From contig JAADVB010000060.1 of the NCBI GenBank assembly GCA_023334545.1, positions 1-64,000 of the forward strand: a stretch of 64,000 nucleotides of DNA, given 5' to 3'. The notes beneath the pieces are model-generated. The model was given only the letters and a program-made list of their open reading frames with translations. It was not told where the DNA came from and made no database searches. Below, piece by piece: positions 9,288 to 14,262 of this stretch; the first letter of the stretch is position 1, and each line of letters starts with the position of its first letter. The DNA comes from Salisapilia sapeloensis CBS 127946. Lineage: Eukaryota > Protista > Oomycota. Both the position numbers and the translations under genes were made by a program.

Positions 9288-9683
9288 TTAGGAGAAGAAG
9301 ACAAGGTAGGTCGCAACGAGGAAGATGATGAGGAAGGACGCAGACACGATCGCCTTGGTCTTATTCGACGTCGCGATCGACAAGTGGAACTGTTCAATCG
9401 CTTGGCTCAGTTCTTCCACGCGTTTCTCGTAATGCTCTCGCTGTTCCGGTGTCAACCTCCCCTTCTTCACACCGTTCTCTTCCAGTTTCTTATCCTGGAA
9501 AAGAATGCCGTTGCATTTCGACAGCTCGGCGCGTGCCATCGCAATCGCTTGTGCAGCCTTGCCACCGTACTTGGTCGTATAATTCCGGAACTCTTGGTCA
9601 TACTGTTCTGCCGTATCCCGAGCGCCCGTCCGCTCCTTGTATTCGCCTTGCGAGGCTTTCGTCATGCTATTGATCTCGTCCAT
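9288..9683 (-). CDS. Small tail-anchored membrane protein of unknown function
   Basis: Helical, charged body from MDEINSMTK (ATG 9683) ending in a C-terminal hydrophobic segment AIVSASFLIIFLVATYLVFFS. The frame is open further upstream, so the start is uncertain. Confidence 0.6.
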   Translation of the reverse strand: MDEINSMTKASQGEYKERTGARDTAEQYDQEFRNYTTKYGGKAAQAIAMARAELSKCNGILFQDKKLEENGVKKGRLTPEQREHYEKRVEELSQAIEQFHLSIATSNKTKAIVSASFLIIFLVATYLVFFS

Positions 9684-9804
9684 CGCCGTTACGTGCTGTC
9701 TATCGCTCGGTCGTTCAGATGCACAATAGTCTTCACGCTCCAAGCAGACTCCACCTGCTTTTGTACAACGACTAAATTGGAGGTGGGCAAAATCGATCGG
9801 AAGC

Positions 9805-10279
9805 ATGCGACTTCGACAGCTTATGGTGCTCAGTCGAGACGTAGCCAAGTCTCGTGAATTCTTTGAGCATGGTCTAGGCCTACGTCTACTCCGGTCGTCC
9901 GACTCGTTCGTGGAGTTTGATACACAGGCTGGAGCCCCTCTATGCATCCAACAAGCCCACAGGTCTGCTTGTCACCTCTCACTAGCTTGCTGATCCATTG
10001 ACGCTCGGCATAGTGAAGCAGCATGCAGCACAGGCTATAGTCCATTTCTCAACTTCGACATCCAAGACCTGGATGAAGCGATTCCTCGACTCATCATGAT
10101 GGGCGGCATCATGGATGGACCGATCAAGTACCCAGCGCATGGCAAAGTACTTCTTCCTATAAACTATCTTCATCGCCAAGTATAATTGTATTAAATAGGT
10201 CGCGTCCATGCGGTCTCCGGATGGACTGATGATTGGACTATACGAACCAAACTCGTGGGATACCGTCACGTCTGCATAG
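9805..10279 (+). CDS. Glyoxalase/VOC-family protein (3 exons)
   Basis: Introns 9963-10013 and 10147-10198 join in frame: MRLRQLMVLSRDVAKSREFFEHGLGL...LNFDIQDLDEAIPRLIMMGG..DGPIKYPAHGKVASMRSPDGLMIGLYEP. This is the paired beta-alpha-beta-beta-beta VOC pattern. Confidence 0.85.
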
Positions 10280-10333
10280 ATAATAGACCAACGATGGATT
10301 TTTCAATTACGCTTTCGTCGTATAACGCAAGAA

Positions 10334-12096
10334 TTATATTTGATGGAGACTAACGCGAGCGAATGAGTGGGCTCCTTTCTTGTGCCGAAGTGATCGTCTT
10401 GGGTAGCATGCAGCGCACAAGTCATAGTCAAAGCAGACGCTACAGGAATGGTTAGTACGATGTTGAGTCTGTATGGTTAGGTGGACGTACTTGCAGGTGT
10501 AGTAAGGTGTCGCTGGATCAACAATCTCCGAGTCACATCCATCGCATCGGATACCGACGACTGGTTCGTCTAGTCTGTCACTTTCGTCGCTATCATCGAT
10601 CGTAATCACCGTCTGCCCGTTGTCTGTTACTTGCTTCTGTGGCATCCATCCACATCGATCGAAGCATATTCCACTTTTCTTGTGCTCATGATGCTCACAA
10701 CTCACTCTCGCTTTCTTCCCTGGTCCACCCTTCATCTTCCATCCACACATGTCAGCAATGCTCCGGACGACTTGATCACACTCGCCTAAGAGCGACATCT
10801 CAAAATCCTCTTCTTCCACGTCATCTTCATCTTTAAAATTGGCTTCTTTATTCCTATGCTTCTTCTTTCGTTTAATCGGTGTCTTATTTATGACGATCTG
10901 GGGGATATTCGTCGGCAAGAAGGCTGGGATCTCCGATACTGGTGCCACCTTCAATGAAGTCCCGAGGATCAGCAATAGATCTGCTTCCAGTCTATCTTTC
11001 GTGATACTTGCACTAACGAACTCTGGTAGCTTTTCGCCAAAGAATGTGATCTGAGGCTTCAAAATGCCTCGACAAGTCGGGATGGAGCAAGTGGGGACAA
11101 CACCTGCCTGAATGGCTTGAGACAACGACTCGGTGGGCACGACGATCCCACACTTGAGGCATTTGGACCTGGCAAAGCTGCCATGACAAGCGAGAGATTT
11201 CGTAACTCCTGCTTTCTCTTCTAACCCATCGATATTTTGCGTATAGACTCGTAGTAGCTTTCCCTGGTCTTGTAGTAATTTGAGGAATCGATGGGTTGGT
11301 GACGGAGCGACGGTCGTTGGGTTAAATACGCTGCGTACGACTTGATAGAATGGCGAAGGATCGCGACGAAAGTACTCGATGTCAAAGACACATTGCGGAT
11401 CCGGTAGATCTAGTCCCATGTGCTCGACCATTGCGTAGACGCCGTTGGGCGAGCGAAAATCTGGGATGCCACAAGACACACTGATGCCTGCTCCAGCGAT
11501 AACTAGGATCTTACGTGCTCGCTGGATAGCACGACCGACATCTGAAAGGGATTTGATGTTCGGACGAGGCTGTGATAGCCCTCGTGCAGTCACGAGCGAG
11601 TCATTTAGACACTAGAGTATAAAGTTAGTCGATATCGCTAGGATGGTCTGTGCGATGGTTACTTCACGACAGCTATTGGCACCCAAGGTAGCCCCGGACG
11701 GAAGGGCTGGTCGACATCGGTTGTGGTACCTGCGAATGGATGGATGAGACAATTTTTTTTGGCTTTCTTAGAAATGGATCATCAAGTAGCACCGTACCAT
11801 CGATGGCAGACATCACATTGGACGAATGGACTACCACAGACACGATGGCATACGAAGCAATCGCGCTTTTTCTTTGATTTCCGCCTAGAATTCTTCGTCC
11901 GGACGGAAGGTTTCCCACTTTCGTCGTCAATTGCCGTTCGACGTCGTTTGTGGTCGCTCACTTCGTACTCACTATCTGAAGCCTCCCCTTGAGACGATGA
12001 GGAGGATGAATAAGTCGGGATGGCGTCACCCGAGACTAAGGTCGCATAGTCGATATCTTTTAGCTTGGCTTTTCGAGTAGGTCGCCTGGAACTCAT
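10334..12096 (-). CDS. SIR2: Class I (SIRT1/Sir2-like) NAD+-dependent deacylase with N-terminal PHD finger and C-terminal ZZ zinc finger (4 exons)
   Basis: ATG 12096; introns 11730-11797, 11612-11662 (GACTAAC branch point) and 10440-10490 (TACTAAC branch point). Sirtuin core: GAGISVSCGIPDFRS, TQNIDGLE, HG..C-x2-C, FFGE, GTSLKVAP. Spliced PHD: CFVC..CDVC..WYHNRC..CREC. Spliced ZZ: CDGC..YTCNVCFDYDLCAACY..H..HSF. Confidence 0.85.
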
Positions 12097-12596
12097 TTTT
12101 TGTCTAGGTACCTCGACGGAGGATGACAAAGGTATAGAAAAGTGCTGCCTTTGGATGTCTATTCGAGATTGGGCAGGAAGAAATTAAATCGATTTGTTTT
12201 ATTTTGGCATGTACCGTGTGCCACGAATGTGGGCGAAAGGTATATTGAAAGGAAAGACTTTTGTGGACATCAGATGCGAGTACCTGACGGTGGTTTCAGC
12301 TTTAACTGATCTCGACGGAAGAGTGGCGTCCAGGAAGTCGTTACGAACCAAATCAGATTACGTCATAGAATTGATTTGGATGGAAACCTAGAAGTAGGTA
12401 CATGTCTGTATCCGATACATGACTGCATGGGACCTTGGCGACTTCTATCTCCTTTTTCTGGTAACTTTATGGAGAAAGTAGGTGGATGTCTTCCTCTTCT
12501 GACGATACAGTCCAGAGAGATACCTCGCGAACATACGATGGAAGAGTCAATAATGCTCCTACCAATTCGATTGTGCACATCAACTTGGTGTCAAGA

Positions 12597-12612
12597 TCAT
12601 TTCTGCTTTTGC
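12597..12612 (+). promoter_or_regulatory. Oomycete INR+FPR core promoter element
   Basis: TCATTTC-tg-CTTTTGC matches YCAYTYY-NN-MWTTTNC, the published oomycete initiator plus flanking promoter region consensus as I recall it. It ends about 40 nt upstream of ATG 12652. Confidence 0.55.
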
Positions 12613-12651
12613 ATCGTCCGAGTCACATCTCCCTCCACCTCCTGATTCGAC

Positions 12652-14262
12652 ATGGTCAAGCTGTTTGGACTGAGTATCACTGCCGTTTCGCTCATCCTTG
12701 CGCAAGTGAGTGCCCTCGACTCGTACACTGTTCCATCCGTGGACTATACCAAGTTACAAGAACAGTCGACGACGGACAAGGCCACTGAATCCGATGCATC
12801 GGCTCTACTTGACGCTCTCCAGAAGGATGGTATCGTCTCGTTGAGTAACATCCCGGACTATGCCGAAAAGCGAGACGCGTACCTGAAGGCTGCTGCCGAG
12901 TGCGCCGTTTTAGCTCAAGCGAACGAAGCTGACTTCCTCCTCCACCGGACGCTACAGGACGGCACCAAACGCTATACTGTCAGTACGGAGAGTGGTCGAA
13001 AGCTGAAAGAGGCTGCGCAAGACACGGTCGACACTTGCCCAGGTTACCTCGAGGCTTACCAGTCTTTCAGTCAAATCGTGGAAGATGCTGTCGCCAACAT
13101 CGGCAGTGCGTTGGACGCTACGGCTGCCTTTAAGATCTCGTCTGAGAAACTCACTGCTCGCCAGCTAATGGAAGACTCTGTGCACCTGGATCACTTCCAC
13201 GCGTATGAAGCTGCTCCAAAGTCTTCTCGTCGTCTAGAAGACAGTGACCTGTTGTCGCTAGAGATGCACACCGATAACGGTCTGATGATCGCCATGTCTG
13301 CGCCAGAGTACTTTGACGTCTCAAGTGACAACCAAGTGACGAAAAAGGAAGGTGATGGGGCTGGATTGATCATTAAGACGCAGGCTGGGGAACGGGTCAA
13401 GCCGGACCTCAAGTCCGACGAGCTTGTGCTCATGTTGGGCGAAGGTATCAACTCGTGGATCCACACGAGTCCGGAGCTTCATCCGGTTGAACACGGTATG
13501 CAATATCCAGAGTCGGTCACGTATACGGATGAAGGCCACAAGACACTTCGTGCTTGGTTTGGAAAAATGATTTTACTGAACGCTATGCAAGAGATGGCCA
13601 ATTCTGGTATGTCTTTTGATGAGTACTCTCGTCGCACCACTCGCTACCTACTGGCGTCCAATGCTGACAACGACGCTTTTGCCTCCGTTGCCTGTCCACC
13701 GCATCGCCATCTGCAGTCTTCGGATGACCAATGCCAAGTACGCAAATGTACGATGAAGGAAGGTGTGACAATGGACGACATGGAGCACTCGTGTAATATA
13801 ATGTGCAACCACGACAACGGAGAAGACGATGACAAAATGAAGGCACAGTGTAAGAAACAGTGTGACTGTGAAGATGCCACTGAAGATGGCCAACGCTGCT
13901 GGATGTTGTGTGTCGCCGACTTGGATGAAGATGCGTGTCCACTAGACGCACAGGAATGCGATCTCGGCTCGGACTTTGAAAGCATTGGTGTGTCGTGCAG
14001 TTCGGGAGGAAACTCTTCGTCTAAGAGTGACATGGGTCACATGCACATGAGTGGCAGTGGCATGGATCATATGCACATGAGTGGCAGTGGCATGGATCAT
14101 ATGCACATGAGTGGTGCTTCATCCTCTAAGGAGGAAGTAAGTAAGTCAGAGTCCAGCACTGGCTCTGCTTCCGAGAGTGGAGGATCTGACTCGAGTGCTA
14201 TTGCCGTCGCTTCGACGGCACTTTCGGCTATTGCGGCCACCTTTGCTATTCTCTTCCAGTAG
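12652..14262 (+). CDS. Secreted, probably GPI-anchored protein with an IPNS/2OG-Fe(II) dioxygenase-like domain, Cys-rich region and Met/His repeats
   Basis: Signal peptide MVKLFGLSITAVSLILAQVSA. HxD..H triad: MHTDNGL..GLII..LVLMLGEG..HPVEHGM..RAW. Cys-rich segment, Ser-rich linker, hydrophobic C-terminus SSAIAVASTALSAIAATFAILFQ. Confidence 0.8.
   Translation: MVKLFGLSITAVSLILAQVSALDSYTVPSVDYTKLQEQSTTDKATESDASALLDALQKDGIVSLSNIPDYAEKRDAYLKAAAECAVLAQANEADFLLHRTLQDGTKRYTVSTESGRKLKEAAQDTVDTCPGYLEAYQSFSQIVEDAVANIGSALDATAAFKISSEKLTARQLMEDSVHLDHFHAYEAAPKSSRRLEDSDLLSLEMHTDNGLMIAMSAPEYFDVSSDNQVTKKEGDGAGLIIKTQAGERVKPDLKSDELVLMLGEGINSWIHTSPELHPVEHGMQYPESVTYTDEGHKTLRAWFGKMILLNAMQEMANSGMSFDEYSRRTTRYLLASNADNDAFASVACPPHRHLQSSDDQCQVRKCTMKEGVTMDDMEHSCNIMCNHDNGEDDDKMKAQCKKQCDCEDATEDGQRCWMLCVADLDEDACPLDAQECDLGSDFESIGVSCSSGGNSSSKSDMGHMHMSGSGMDHMHMSGSGMDHMHMSGASSSKEEVSKSESSTGSASESGGSDSSAIAVASTALSAIAATFAILFQ
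14041..14114 (+). repeat. 30-nt coding tandem repeat (about 2.5 copies) encoding MHMSGSGMDH
   Basis: ATGCACATGAGTGGCAGTGGCATGGATCAT occurs exactly at 14041 and 14071, with a partial copy at 14101. Confidence 0.95.

Follow-up and report, generated by a model that had tools for sequence, protein, structure and literature searches.

The locus at 10,334-12,096 of the window, a 64,000-nucleotide stretch of contig JAADVB010000060.1 of the oomycete Salisapilia sapeloensis CBS 127946, raises two questions: whether a PHD finger, a sirtuin and a ZZ finger are joined there in one protein and, if so, where such an enzyme would act. The raw ORF track of the minus strand contains a 115-aa ORF (11782..12129) and a 419-aa ORF (10334..11593). 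Excision of 11797-11730 (68 nt) and 11662-11612 (51 nt), both GT..AG, fuses the two ORFs in frame. With a third intron, the PHD-Sir2-ZZ gene consists of four exons on the minus strand, running from ATG 12096 to TAA 10334 with 1593 coding bases and 530 codons. Neither finger was visible in the raw ORF track, as the three short introns cut through both. The parts of the gene, with the evidence for each in brackets, are as follows.

12097..12273, minus strand: 5' leader, minimum extent (contig ends)
11798..12096, minus strand: exon 1, coding part, with start codon, N-terminal motif, basic cluster and PHD ligands 1-4 (ORF, alignment, contigs)
11730..11797, minus strand: intron 1, 68 nt, GT..AG (skipped in contigs of four runs)
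11663..11729, minus strand: exon 2, 67 nt, with the PHD His and the sixth and seventh ligands (contigs, alignment)
11612..11662, minus strand: intron 2, GT..AG, 51 nt, including a CTAAC that resembles a branch point (skipped in contigs of four runs)
10491..11611, minus strand: exon 3 (sequence, Pfam, contigs, structure-database search)
10440..10490, minus strand: intron 3, 51 nt, GT..AG, stop-free (skipped in contigs of four runs)
10334..10439, minus strand: exon 4, coding part, with TAA stop 10336-10334 (sequence, contigs)
10295..10333, minus strand: 3' UTR, minimum extent; overlaps the convergent neighbouring gene at its 3' end (contig ends)

The splicing pattern is seen directly in assembled reads. 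The stretches 11612-11662, 11730-11797 and 10440-10490 are all skipped in contigs of four public runs; the skipped stretches are CT..AC on the plus strand, hence GT..AG in the direction of the gene, and the contigs contain 0 letter differences. A single contig covers all four exons in each run. The joint of intron 1 is listed in the contigs as 11725->11794 with 'cut +4'. The four runs represent three samples from one study and their RNA label is a guess; they are taken here as transcript-derived because five GT..AG introns of two neighbouring genes are also missing from them and the intergenic stretch 12275-12595 is uncovered. The gene is expressed, its spliced form being carried by these transcript-like contigs. 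The 5' contig ends across the four runs are 12273, 12206, 12125 and 12101, and a possible upstream ORF of 23 codons (12270-12199) lies in the leader. At the other end, contigs of one run stop at 10295 for the sirtuin gene and at 10307 for the convergent neighbour, and the two genes are merged into one contig in two runs.

The reading frame is consistent with each splice. Intron 1 splits a TG|G codon, giving Trp, exon 2 (11729-11663) contributes 22 residues, and exon 3 opens with the codon TGT (11611-11609), which supplies the eighth zinc ligand of the C4HC3 pattern. The remainder of exon 3 encodes a linker helix, the entire sirtuin core, a hairpin, an acidic linker and the first half of the ZZ finger. 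Intron 3 (51 nt) is in frame and stop-free inside that finger and splits an AA|C codon for Asn; the C-x2-C pair of the ZZ finger is restored only once it is removed, and its retention would lengthen the ZZ finger by 17 residues. Alignment of the exon pieces with oomycete orthologues reveals 0 residues missing or extra at any junction. The earlier note had proposed the fusion of the two ORFs through introns 11730-11797 and 11612-11662, with the last PHD ligand provided by the first codon of the sirtuin exon. Both proposals are borne out: the introns are absent, to the base, from the transcript-like contigs of four runs, the junctions are gap-free against orthologues and the column of the eighth ligand is at least 90% conserved.

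Orthologues of about 530 aa are found in Phytophthora, Pythium, Globisporangium and downy mildews; the exon translations align with them gap-free, and their Pfam content is PHD, SIR2 and ZZ. Identity to these orthologues is 43-49% over 95-99% of exon 3, and no identical protein was present in the protein database searched. The gene tree places the window protein inside the oomycetes as sister to the Pythium/Phytophthora/Lagenidium set (100/100 and 96/94), outside which it forms a long branch. Judged by sequence, the window protein is an orthologue of the PHD-Sir2-ZZ sirtuins of the PifSir2.2 type. Among the 120 matches listed, Sir2-ZZ is widespread in stramenopiles and the PHD finger occurs only in oomycetes, so that within those matches the PHD finger looks like an oomycete addition. 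Conservation of all zinc ligands and of the ZZ cage holds from Saprolegniales to Peronosporales, and that of the ZZ finger reaches brown algae and diatoms.

The PHD-Sir2-ZZ order, as the earlier note had read it, is thus supported by transcript contigs and by comparison, with Pfam finding all three domains in the orthologues. The accompanying statement that no characterised example was known stands. The literature search found no functional study of oomycete PHD-Sir2-ZZ sirtuins, only a 2016 survey and a 2024 review, but the architecture was catalogued in 2016 and the claim of novelty was too strong. Wang et al. 2016 described class III HDACs with Sir2 and two of PHD, RING and ZnF-ZZ (PMC5112689), the 2024 review lists PifSir2.2 as the PHD-bearing Sir2 (PMC11261156), and one NCBI record carries the product name 'ZZ-type, PHD-type, Sirtuin family'. 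The architecture is confirmed as real, conserved across oomycetes and already catalogued, and the window gene is a further member.

The catalytic domain and the segment that follows it are defined by these features.

10940..11494, minus strand: Sir2 catalytic domain, covering the whole of Pfam PF02146, 1-180 of 180 (E 2.6e-56, 190.8 bits; curated cut-off 24 bits; a further search gave the same location)
11174..11188, minus strand: CHGSF motif with the catalytic His (aligned to human SIRT1 CHGSF; His and Gly invariant)
11072..11161, minus strand: structural zinc site of the small domain, CLKC ... CSIPTC (4/4 Cys columns invariant)
10646..10699, minus strand: conserved Cys/His-bearing segment after the core, predicted beta-hairpin (orthologue model, structure alignment)

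The nearest solved relatives of the core are SIRT1 (2.4e-67) and yeast Sir2 (1.6e-64); the other sirtuin classes match more weakly, SIRT2 and SIRT3 at about 1e-51 and SIRT5 at about 1e-23. The core is 44-45% identical to SIRT1, and the motifs GAGxS..GIPDFRS and TQNID and the catalytic His in HG align with human SIRT1 in columns that are invariant in the family alignment. The catalytic domain is therefore closest by sequence to class I, SIRT1/Sir2 type. A folded orthologue, standing in for the window protein, aligns with SIRT1 and Sir2 at Z 31-32.5. In this model the segment after the core forms a hairpin (strands 402-404 and 410-413, pLDDT 85-91). Alignment with SIRT1 constructs that contain residues 641-660 extends to model residue 416-438, whereas alignment with core-only SIRT1 ends at 398. 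The hairpin, in which the F413 column is nearly invariant in the family alignment, is thus predicted to take the place of the C-terminal regulatory segment of SIRT1. An acidic linker separates it from the ZZ finger.

The N-terminal part of the protein contains the PHD finger, a conserved motif and one of two basic clusters.

12007..12084, minus strand: conserved N-terminal motif RPTRKAK..D-[IV]-DYA.L..G..IP.Y (alignment, Saprolegnia to Phytophthora)
11863..11886, minus strand: basic cluster RRKSKKKR, directly N-terminal of the PHD finger (alignment; orthologues have KKKRRK in the same position)
11609..11859, minus strand: PHD finger (C4HC3), exons 1-3, cut by introns 1 and 2 (alignment, profile vs PDB, orthologue Pfam)
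10847..10873, minus strand: second basic cluster KRKKKHRNK, in an insert preceding the last core helix (alignment)

The region of the orthologue model that matches the N-terminal motif is disordered (pLDDT 33-44). Both basic clusters are conserved in the orthologue alignment, and RRKSKKKR is a candidate nuclear localisation signal. From its sequence, the protein is predicted to be an NAD-dependent protein-lysine deacetylase and is probably nuclear.

The PHD ligands have canonical order and spacing across exons 1-3 (C-x2-C, C-x2-C, x4-H-x2-C, C-x2-C), and conservation reaches 90% or more in 8/8 ligand columns of the PHD family alignment. Domain calls for the window protein are based on exon pieces and orthologues. 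Pfam detected no PHD finger on the separate exon pieces, and this result, together with a ZZ match that stays below threshold, is expected because the introns split both fingers, and does not count against them. Orthologues are borderline for PF00628 (23.4-25 bits; cut-off 24), and two Pythium-type proteins reach 16.5-20.7 bits. The matches of the family profile in the PDB are PHD fingers (best E 4.1e-09), the best being PHF12, KDM5A PHD1, CHD4, AIRE PHD1, JADE1, KDM5B PHD1 and PHF21A/BHC80. The PHD fingers of PHF12, KDM5A, CHD4, AIRE and BHC80 are readers of unmethylated H3K4, and a canonical H3 tail is encoded in the same genome. The residues that decide H3K4 state preference vary among orthologues, which counts against reading of unmethylated K4: the acidic residue preceding the first PHD Cys is not invariant in the family alignment, and the residue before the zinc-binding His is Trp in the window protein and Pythium-type proteins and Leu, Met or Val in Phytophthora. 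An H3K4me3-type aromatic cage is unlikely as a conserved function, as conservation of the single cage-like Trp does not extend to Phytophthora or Saprolegniales and the position before the seventh ligand is not aromatic. A RING finger was rejected: its ligands would follow the order C3HC4, those observed follow C4HC3, and every one of the best solved matches is a PHD finger. A complex prediction pairing the PHD finger of the Globisporangium orthologue with residues 2-36 of the histone H3 encoded in this genome, run without an alignment and without controls, scored 0.00 and returned no answer.

The second finger lies at the C-terminus.

10367..10546, minus strand: ZZ finger (C-x2-C, C-x2-C, C-x2-C, H, H), split by intron 3 (alignment, profile vs PDB)

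Its pattern corresponds to two zinc sites, C-x2-C ... C-x2-C and C-x2-C ... H ... H, and conservation in the ligand columns of the ZZ family alignment is 90% or higher. Orthologues have exactly two residues between the Cys of the pair at intron 3. Pfam PF00569 matches the unspliced frame partially, at 19.7 bits against a cut-off of 21.4, and orthologue ZZ fingers reach up to 30.5 bits. The ZZ finger of the window protein contains an acidic cage, formed by the Asp that follows the first Cys, in CDGC, and by DYD, which precedes the fifth Cys; oomycete orthologues have D or N at the first position followed by DYD/DFD, with Asn replacing the first cage Asp in Phytophthora. Residues equivalent to the cages of p62 (Asp129/147/149; PMC8038991), HERC2 (D2709/D2728/D2730; PMC9001736) and ZZZ3 (D824/D848; PMC6138639) are all present in the window ZZ. 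In those three proteins the cage grips a free protein N-terminus (PMC8038991, PMC9001736, PMC6138639). H3-binding ZZ domains follow a rule of Asp/Asn plus Asp in the cage, although not all acidic-cage ZZ domains bind H3 (PMC6138639). By its cage residues, the window ZZ would belong to the N-terminus-binding subtype.

It seems likely that the protein is a SIRT1/Sir2-class deacetylase that carries its targeting modules within the same chain, the fingers docking on histone H3. The PHD finger, the ZZ finger or both would dock the enzyme on the extreme N-terminus of H3, the most plausible target being a tail that is not methylated at K4. The tethered catalytic domain would then deacetylate nearby lysines and keep chromatin hypoacetylated, one chain doing what HDAC complexes do with separate PHD subunits. 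Histone reading by the two fingers is suggested by their sequences. The earlier note had called both fingers histone-reader types; the PHD profile matches and the fit of the ZZ cage agree with this description, but the ZZ finger is nearer to p62/Nbr1 than to p300/CBP. A stronger form of the proposal is possible but doubtful: an H3 docking cassette in which the PHD finger would take a tail with unmethylated K4 and the ZZ finger would cage Ala1, so that two tails or nucleosomes are held and hypoacetylation is maintained or spread without Sir3/Sir4-like partners. The earlier note had likewise suggested that silent chromatin could be nucleated or spread in the absence of such partners. In such a cassette the fingers would flank an eraser in the PHD-ZZ order of the p300/CBP writers. 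One point against H3 docking is competition: on a single tail both fingers would target the same four N-terminal residues.

SIRT1 has many non-histone substrates, and a SIRT1-like enzyme could instead serve protein quality control or non-histone deacetylation, with a ZZ finger that reads non-histone N-termini (arginylated N-degrons, cargo), as in p62, Nbr1, KCMF1 and PRT1, and a PHD finger acting as a general adaptor. The ZZ profile speaks for this reading. Nbr1 (4e-13) and p62 (6e-10) are its best matches in the PDB; CBP, HERC2 and p300 follow at about 1e-7, and Ada2 and KCMF1 ZZ domains are matched as well. The CDGC plus DYD cage is identical to that of p62 (PMC8038991). By sequence the window ZZ is nearer to the p62/Nbr1 type, which binds N-degron or cargo N-termini, than to p300/CBP. 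Sequence cannot separate an H3 from an Nt-Arg ligand because the HERC2 ZZ binds both in one pocket (PMC9001736). This alternative is nonetheless unlikely, since the PHD profile matches chromatin readers of HDAC and demethylase complexes, the NLS-like basic clusters are conserved, the catalytic domain is of the SIRT1/Sir2 nuclear class, and the Phytophthora orthologues have Asn for the first cage Asp, as do p300 and CBP (PMC6138639).

It is less likely still that the fingers regulate the core from within or recruit partner complexes with no histone contact, comparable to the N-terminal domain and C-terminal segment of SIRT1. The conserved hairpin predicted in place of the SIRT1 regulatory segment would suit such a role, as would the strongly conserved, disordered N-terminal motif, which resembles a docking peptide for a partner; moreover, some PHD or ZZ domains do not bind histones (PMC6138639). 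However, conservation of ligands and cage from Saprolegniales to Peronosporales suggests an external conserved ligand, and no interdomain contacts could be read from the orthologue model output. Finally, a gene-model artefact, in which chance splice-like signals join a small PHD gene to an adjacent sirtuin gene, has the raw ORF track with its two separate ORFs in its favour and is refuted by single contigs of four runs that span the four exons with exact GT..AG removal, by orthologues of more than 10 oomycete genera that are uninterrupted at every junction, and by an eighth PHD ligand and a ZZ C-x2-C that are present only after splicing.

Oomycetes include major crop and fish pathogens. The 2024 review attributes their plasticity to epigenetic regulation and states that no 5mC DNA methylation has been found in oomycetes (PMC11261156). 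With two fingers of histone-reader type in the same chain, a SIRT1-class eraser is a compact, testable candidate for the way in which hypoacetylated chromatin is targeted in these organisms. Were the docking cassette to prove true, the protein would be a one-protein silencing module relevant to the epigenetic switching of oomycete effector genes. Results obtained with one member would transfer across oomycetes because the protein is conserved from Saprolegnia to Phytophthora.

PifSir2.2 and its orthologues share with the window protein the order PHD, Sir2, ZZ, the N-terminal motif and the hairpin. Unlike the PifSir2.2 type, the window gene is interrupted by three short introns, which divide both fingers, and unlike the Phytophthora orthologues, its product retains Trp before the PHD His. 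SIRT1 and Sir2 resemble the window protein in the core motifs checked and the aligned zinc site, and the hairpin aligns with the C-terminal regulatory segment of SIRT1; in contrast to the window protein, the SIRT1 and Sir2 sequences among the matches have neither a PHD nor a ZZ finger. SIRT1 and Sir2 reach chromatin through partners, for example Sir4 and Sir3 or transcription factors. The Sir2-ZZ sirtuins of brown algae, diatoms and Phaeothamnion group with the oomycete proteins in the gene tree. Behind a SIRT1-like core they carry a ZZ finger that agrees in ligand pattern and cage Asp; among the matches listed, their short N-termini yielded no PHD finger.

Outside the sirtuins, p300 and CBP (bromodomain-RING/PHD-HAT-ZZ) also have a PHD finger before and a ZZ finger after a catalytic domain acting in lysine acetylation, and the ZZ profile also matches their ZZ domains in the PDB. 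They are writers rather than erasers and have an unrelated catalytic fold, and the similarity in layout is an analogy. PHF12 (Sin3B), CHD4 (NuRD) and PHF21A/BHC80 (LSD1-CoREST-HDAC), all among the best PHD profile matches, belong to complexes that couple reading of the unmethylated H3 tail to deacetylation. In those HDAC complexes the reader and a zinc-dependent HDAC are on separate chains, whereas in the window protein a reader-like finger is fused to an NAD-dependent sirtuin.

The sirtuin gene lies on the minus strand in four exons, from the ATG at 12096 to the TAA at 10334. The ORF track presents it as two ORFs, which the earlier note claimed to be fused by intron removal into a PHD-Sir2-ZZ protein:

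11782..12129, minus strand, ORF of 115 aa
10334..11593, minus strand, ORF of 419 aa

In the window sequence, a GT at 11797 stands just before the end of the first ORF, AG 11731-11730 is followed by 67 in-frame bases up to a second GT at 11662, and AG 11613-11612 is followed by TGT, the opening codon of the sirtuin exon. The spliced peptide reads C-x2-C, x10, C-x2-C, x4, H, x2, C, x14, C-x2-C, a C4HC3 pattern whose last Cys is supplied by exon 3; the eighth PHD ligand is indeed encoded at the very start of the sirtuin exon, as had been proposed. A third GT..AG interval, 10490-10440 inside the C-terminal finger, is 51 nt, in frame and stop-free, and therefore does not interrupt the raw ORF; its removal regains a C-x2-C pair of that finger. 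The coding sequence has 1593 bases, or 530 codons plus TAA.

A search of public runs gave four, from one study and three samples, with 78-84% of sampled words of 10200-12300 present. Aligned over 9600-12800, their contigs cover the gene without a mismatch, and precisely three intervals within it are absent from them: 10440-10490, 11612-11662 and 11730-11797 (the last entered as 11725->11794, 'cut +4'), each CT..AC on the plus strand and thus GT..AG on the gene's strand. Two GT..AG introns of a convergent plus-strand neighbour are also skipped, and the intergenic 12275-12595 is uncovered. The runs are labelled 'RNA? (a guess)' only, and were treated as RNA-derived because five introns are precisely removed and intergenic DNA is silent, unlike in genomic DNA. 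The four exon translations, entered as separate fragments, each fall in place among 16 orthologues with no residue lost or gained at the junctions, as is also seen in the PHD-region and ZZ-region alignments. The earlier note's observation is confirmed to the base, and the gene model and architecture are almost certainly correct. The reading of the fusion as a gene-model artefact is refuted.

For intron 3 (10440-10490, minus strand) the contigs, which drop rare variants, hold the spliced form alone. Some intron retention may exist, since contigs cannot reveal rare isoforms; retaining intron 3 would give a full-length protein in which 17 additional residues lie between two ZZ zinc ligands. The 5' leader has a possible 23-codon upstream ORF (12199-12270, minus strand), with an inner ATG three codons ahead of its stop, covered by the longest contig alone (from run X1, one of the four, reaching 12273). 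Downstream lies the neighbour:

9805-10279, plus strand, convergent gene of three exons, ~123 aa, introns about 9963-10013 and 10147-10198

By eye its product looks like a glyoxalase/VOC-type protein. Both introns are removed in the contigs of these runs, its stop codon is 54 nt from that of the sirtuin, and transcripts of the two genes share at least 13 nt (10295-10307), with one joint contig in two runs.

The Pfam SIR2 match is full-length (2.6e-56), and among solved structures human SIRT1 (2.4e-67) and yeast Sir2 (1.6e-64) are nearest, with SIRT2/SIRT3 far behind (~1e-51). In the alignment with these solved relatives the NAD-binding motifs, a Cys4 zinc site and the CHGSF motif with its catalytic His are all present, and their columns are invariant among 41 aligned sequences. 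The AlphaFold model of the Pythium oligandrum orthologue (mean pLDDT 76.8; core mostly >90) matches SIRT1/Sir2 with Z 31-32.5. The protein is very probably an active deacetylase. The core is followed by a conserved segment:

10699-10646, minus strand, post-core segment CEHHEHKKSGICFDRCGW, conserved, with a beta-hairpin predicted in the orthologue model

In that model it forms two strands (pLDDT 85-91). Alignments with SIRT1 constructs containing residues 641-660 reach model residue 416-438, and those with core-only SIRT1 end at 398. We read the segment as a putative built-in counterpart of the SIRT1 C-terminal regulatory hairpin, with the caveat that the structure alignment output gives first and last aligned residues only. 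Conserved Cys/His of this segment (..H..CF.xC.C in orthologues), between the core and the ZZ finger, could form a small extra metal site.

The exon-3 translation found 4628 relatives. The best matches, oomycete proteins of ~530 aa, come from Phytophthora, Plasmopara-like, Bremia, Peronospora, Globisporangium and Pythium and share 43-49% identity across 95-99% of the query length; Saprolegnia and Achlya come next (38-40%). No identical protein is in the database searched, and the locus therefore appears unannotated there. Pfam detects PHD, SIR2 and ZZ in orthologues, and the architecture extends across oomycetes. The maximum-likelihood tree places the window protein inside the oomycete clade (support 100/100), on a branch arising after the Saprolegniales split and sister to a group of Lagenidium, Pythium, Globisporangium, Phytophthora and downy mildews (96/94). 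A white-rust-like or other early-branching member of that line would be expected in such a place. Among 120 listed matches, sampled by simple ligand patterns with Pfam checks, PHD and ZZ occur together in the orders of Phytophthora, Pythium and Saprolegnia, and ZZ without PHD in brown algae, diatoms, Phaeothamnion and a number of marine transcriptomes; fungal and animal SIRT1/Sir2 proteins showed neither finger. From these matches the ZZ fusion looks older and stramenopile-wide, with PHD an oomycete addition. The host assembly (22.4 Mb, 1365 contigs) has three sirtuin loci; of the further two, on contigs C534 (56809-57510) and C425 (6276-7016), one gives a match that contains stops, which probably reflect introns, and the other consists of two separate matches.

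The architecture is already catalogued, in a 2016 survey whose class III HDACs include proteins combining Sir2 with two of PHD, RING and ZnF-ZZ (Wang et al., PMC5112689), in a 2024 review that gives PHD only to PifSir2.2 among P. infestans sirtuins (PMC11261156), and in the product name of one NCBI record (P0005: ZZ-type, PHD-type, sirtuin family); to these the window contributes a divergent member with transcript support. No study of function, binding or localisation of these sirtuins was found. The earlier note, which knew of no characterised example, was right in that respect and overstated the novelty of the architecture; its proposed self-targeting deacetylase is plausible.

The ZZ profile matches solved structures of Nbr1, p62, Ada2, CBP, HERC2, KCMF1, p300 and PRT1 (E down to 4e-13), and all zinc ligands are conserved in the ZZ-region alignment. 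The Asp that follows the first Cys (CDGC) and the DYD ahead of the fifth Cys align with p62 Asp129, Asp147 and Asp149, which make up the negatively charged patch where the free N-terminus of the ligand is bound (PMC8038991). These positions also correspond to the cages of HERC2 (D2709/D2728/D2730), which binds both H3 ARTK and Nt-Arg (PMC9001736), and ZZZ3 (D824/D848), which holds H3 Ala1 (PMC6138639). Since ligands and cage residues agree, the ZZ finger is very likely an N-terminus reader. The main alternative is that it reads non-histone N-termini, like p62/Nbr1. H3-binding ZZ domains all have an invariable Asp plus Asp or Asn, and the cage by itself is insufficient (PMC6138639).

The oomycete PHD profile matches solved PHD fingers (E down to 4e-09), foremost PHF12, KDM5A PHD1, CHD4, AIRE PHD1, JADE1, MTF2, WSTF, ATXR5, KDM5B PHD1, DPF2/3 and PHF21A/BHC80; TAF3 and BPTF, which read H3K4me3, have lower scores than this group. 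Most of the top matches recognise an H3 tail whose K4 is unmethylated, and several belong to deacetylase complexes as subunits. At residue level the PHD-region alignment gives a mixed picture: the Pythium/Phytophthora line retains the Asp that follows the third Cys and Saprolegniales do not, the acidic residue ahead of the first Cys is common and not invariant, and a Trp precedes the zinc-binding His in the window protein and in Pythium-type proteins and is missing from Phytophthora. A second alternative is that the fingers regulate the enzyme intramolecularly or recruit partners. A motif ahead of the PHD finger exceeds it in conservation across oomycetes:

12084-12007, minus strand, N-terminal motif of 26 residues, RPTRKAK..D-[IV]-DYA.L..G..IP.Y, conserved from Saprolegnia to Phytophthora

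The motif has no Pfam family and may be a docking peptide; the orthologue model predicts it to be disordered, and its Arg/Lys-rich start is loosely like a histone tail.

The preferred explanation is a nuclear SIRT1-class deacetylase that would be tethered in cis to H3 tails via its own fingers. Two basic clusters, one directly ahead of PHD and the other in a core insert, appear to resemble nuclear localisation signals, and a canonical H3 N-terminus is encoded in the host genome. As a whole this explanation, in which docking is the step we infer, is fairly probable; the chance that at least one finger docks on histone tails is roughly even. Such tethering would be analogous to that of HDAC complexes with PHD subunits, and the layout parallels that of the writer p300/CBP, whose catalytic domain likewise lies between PHD and ZZ fingers.
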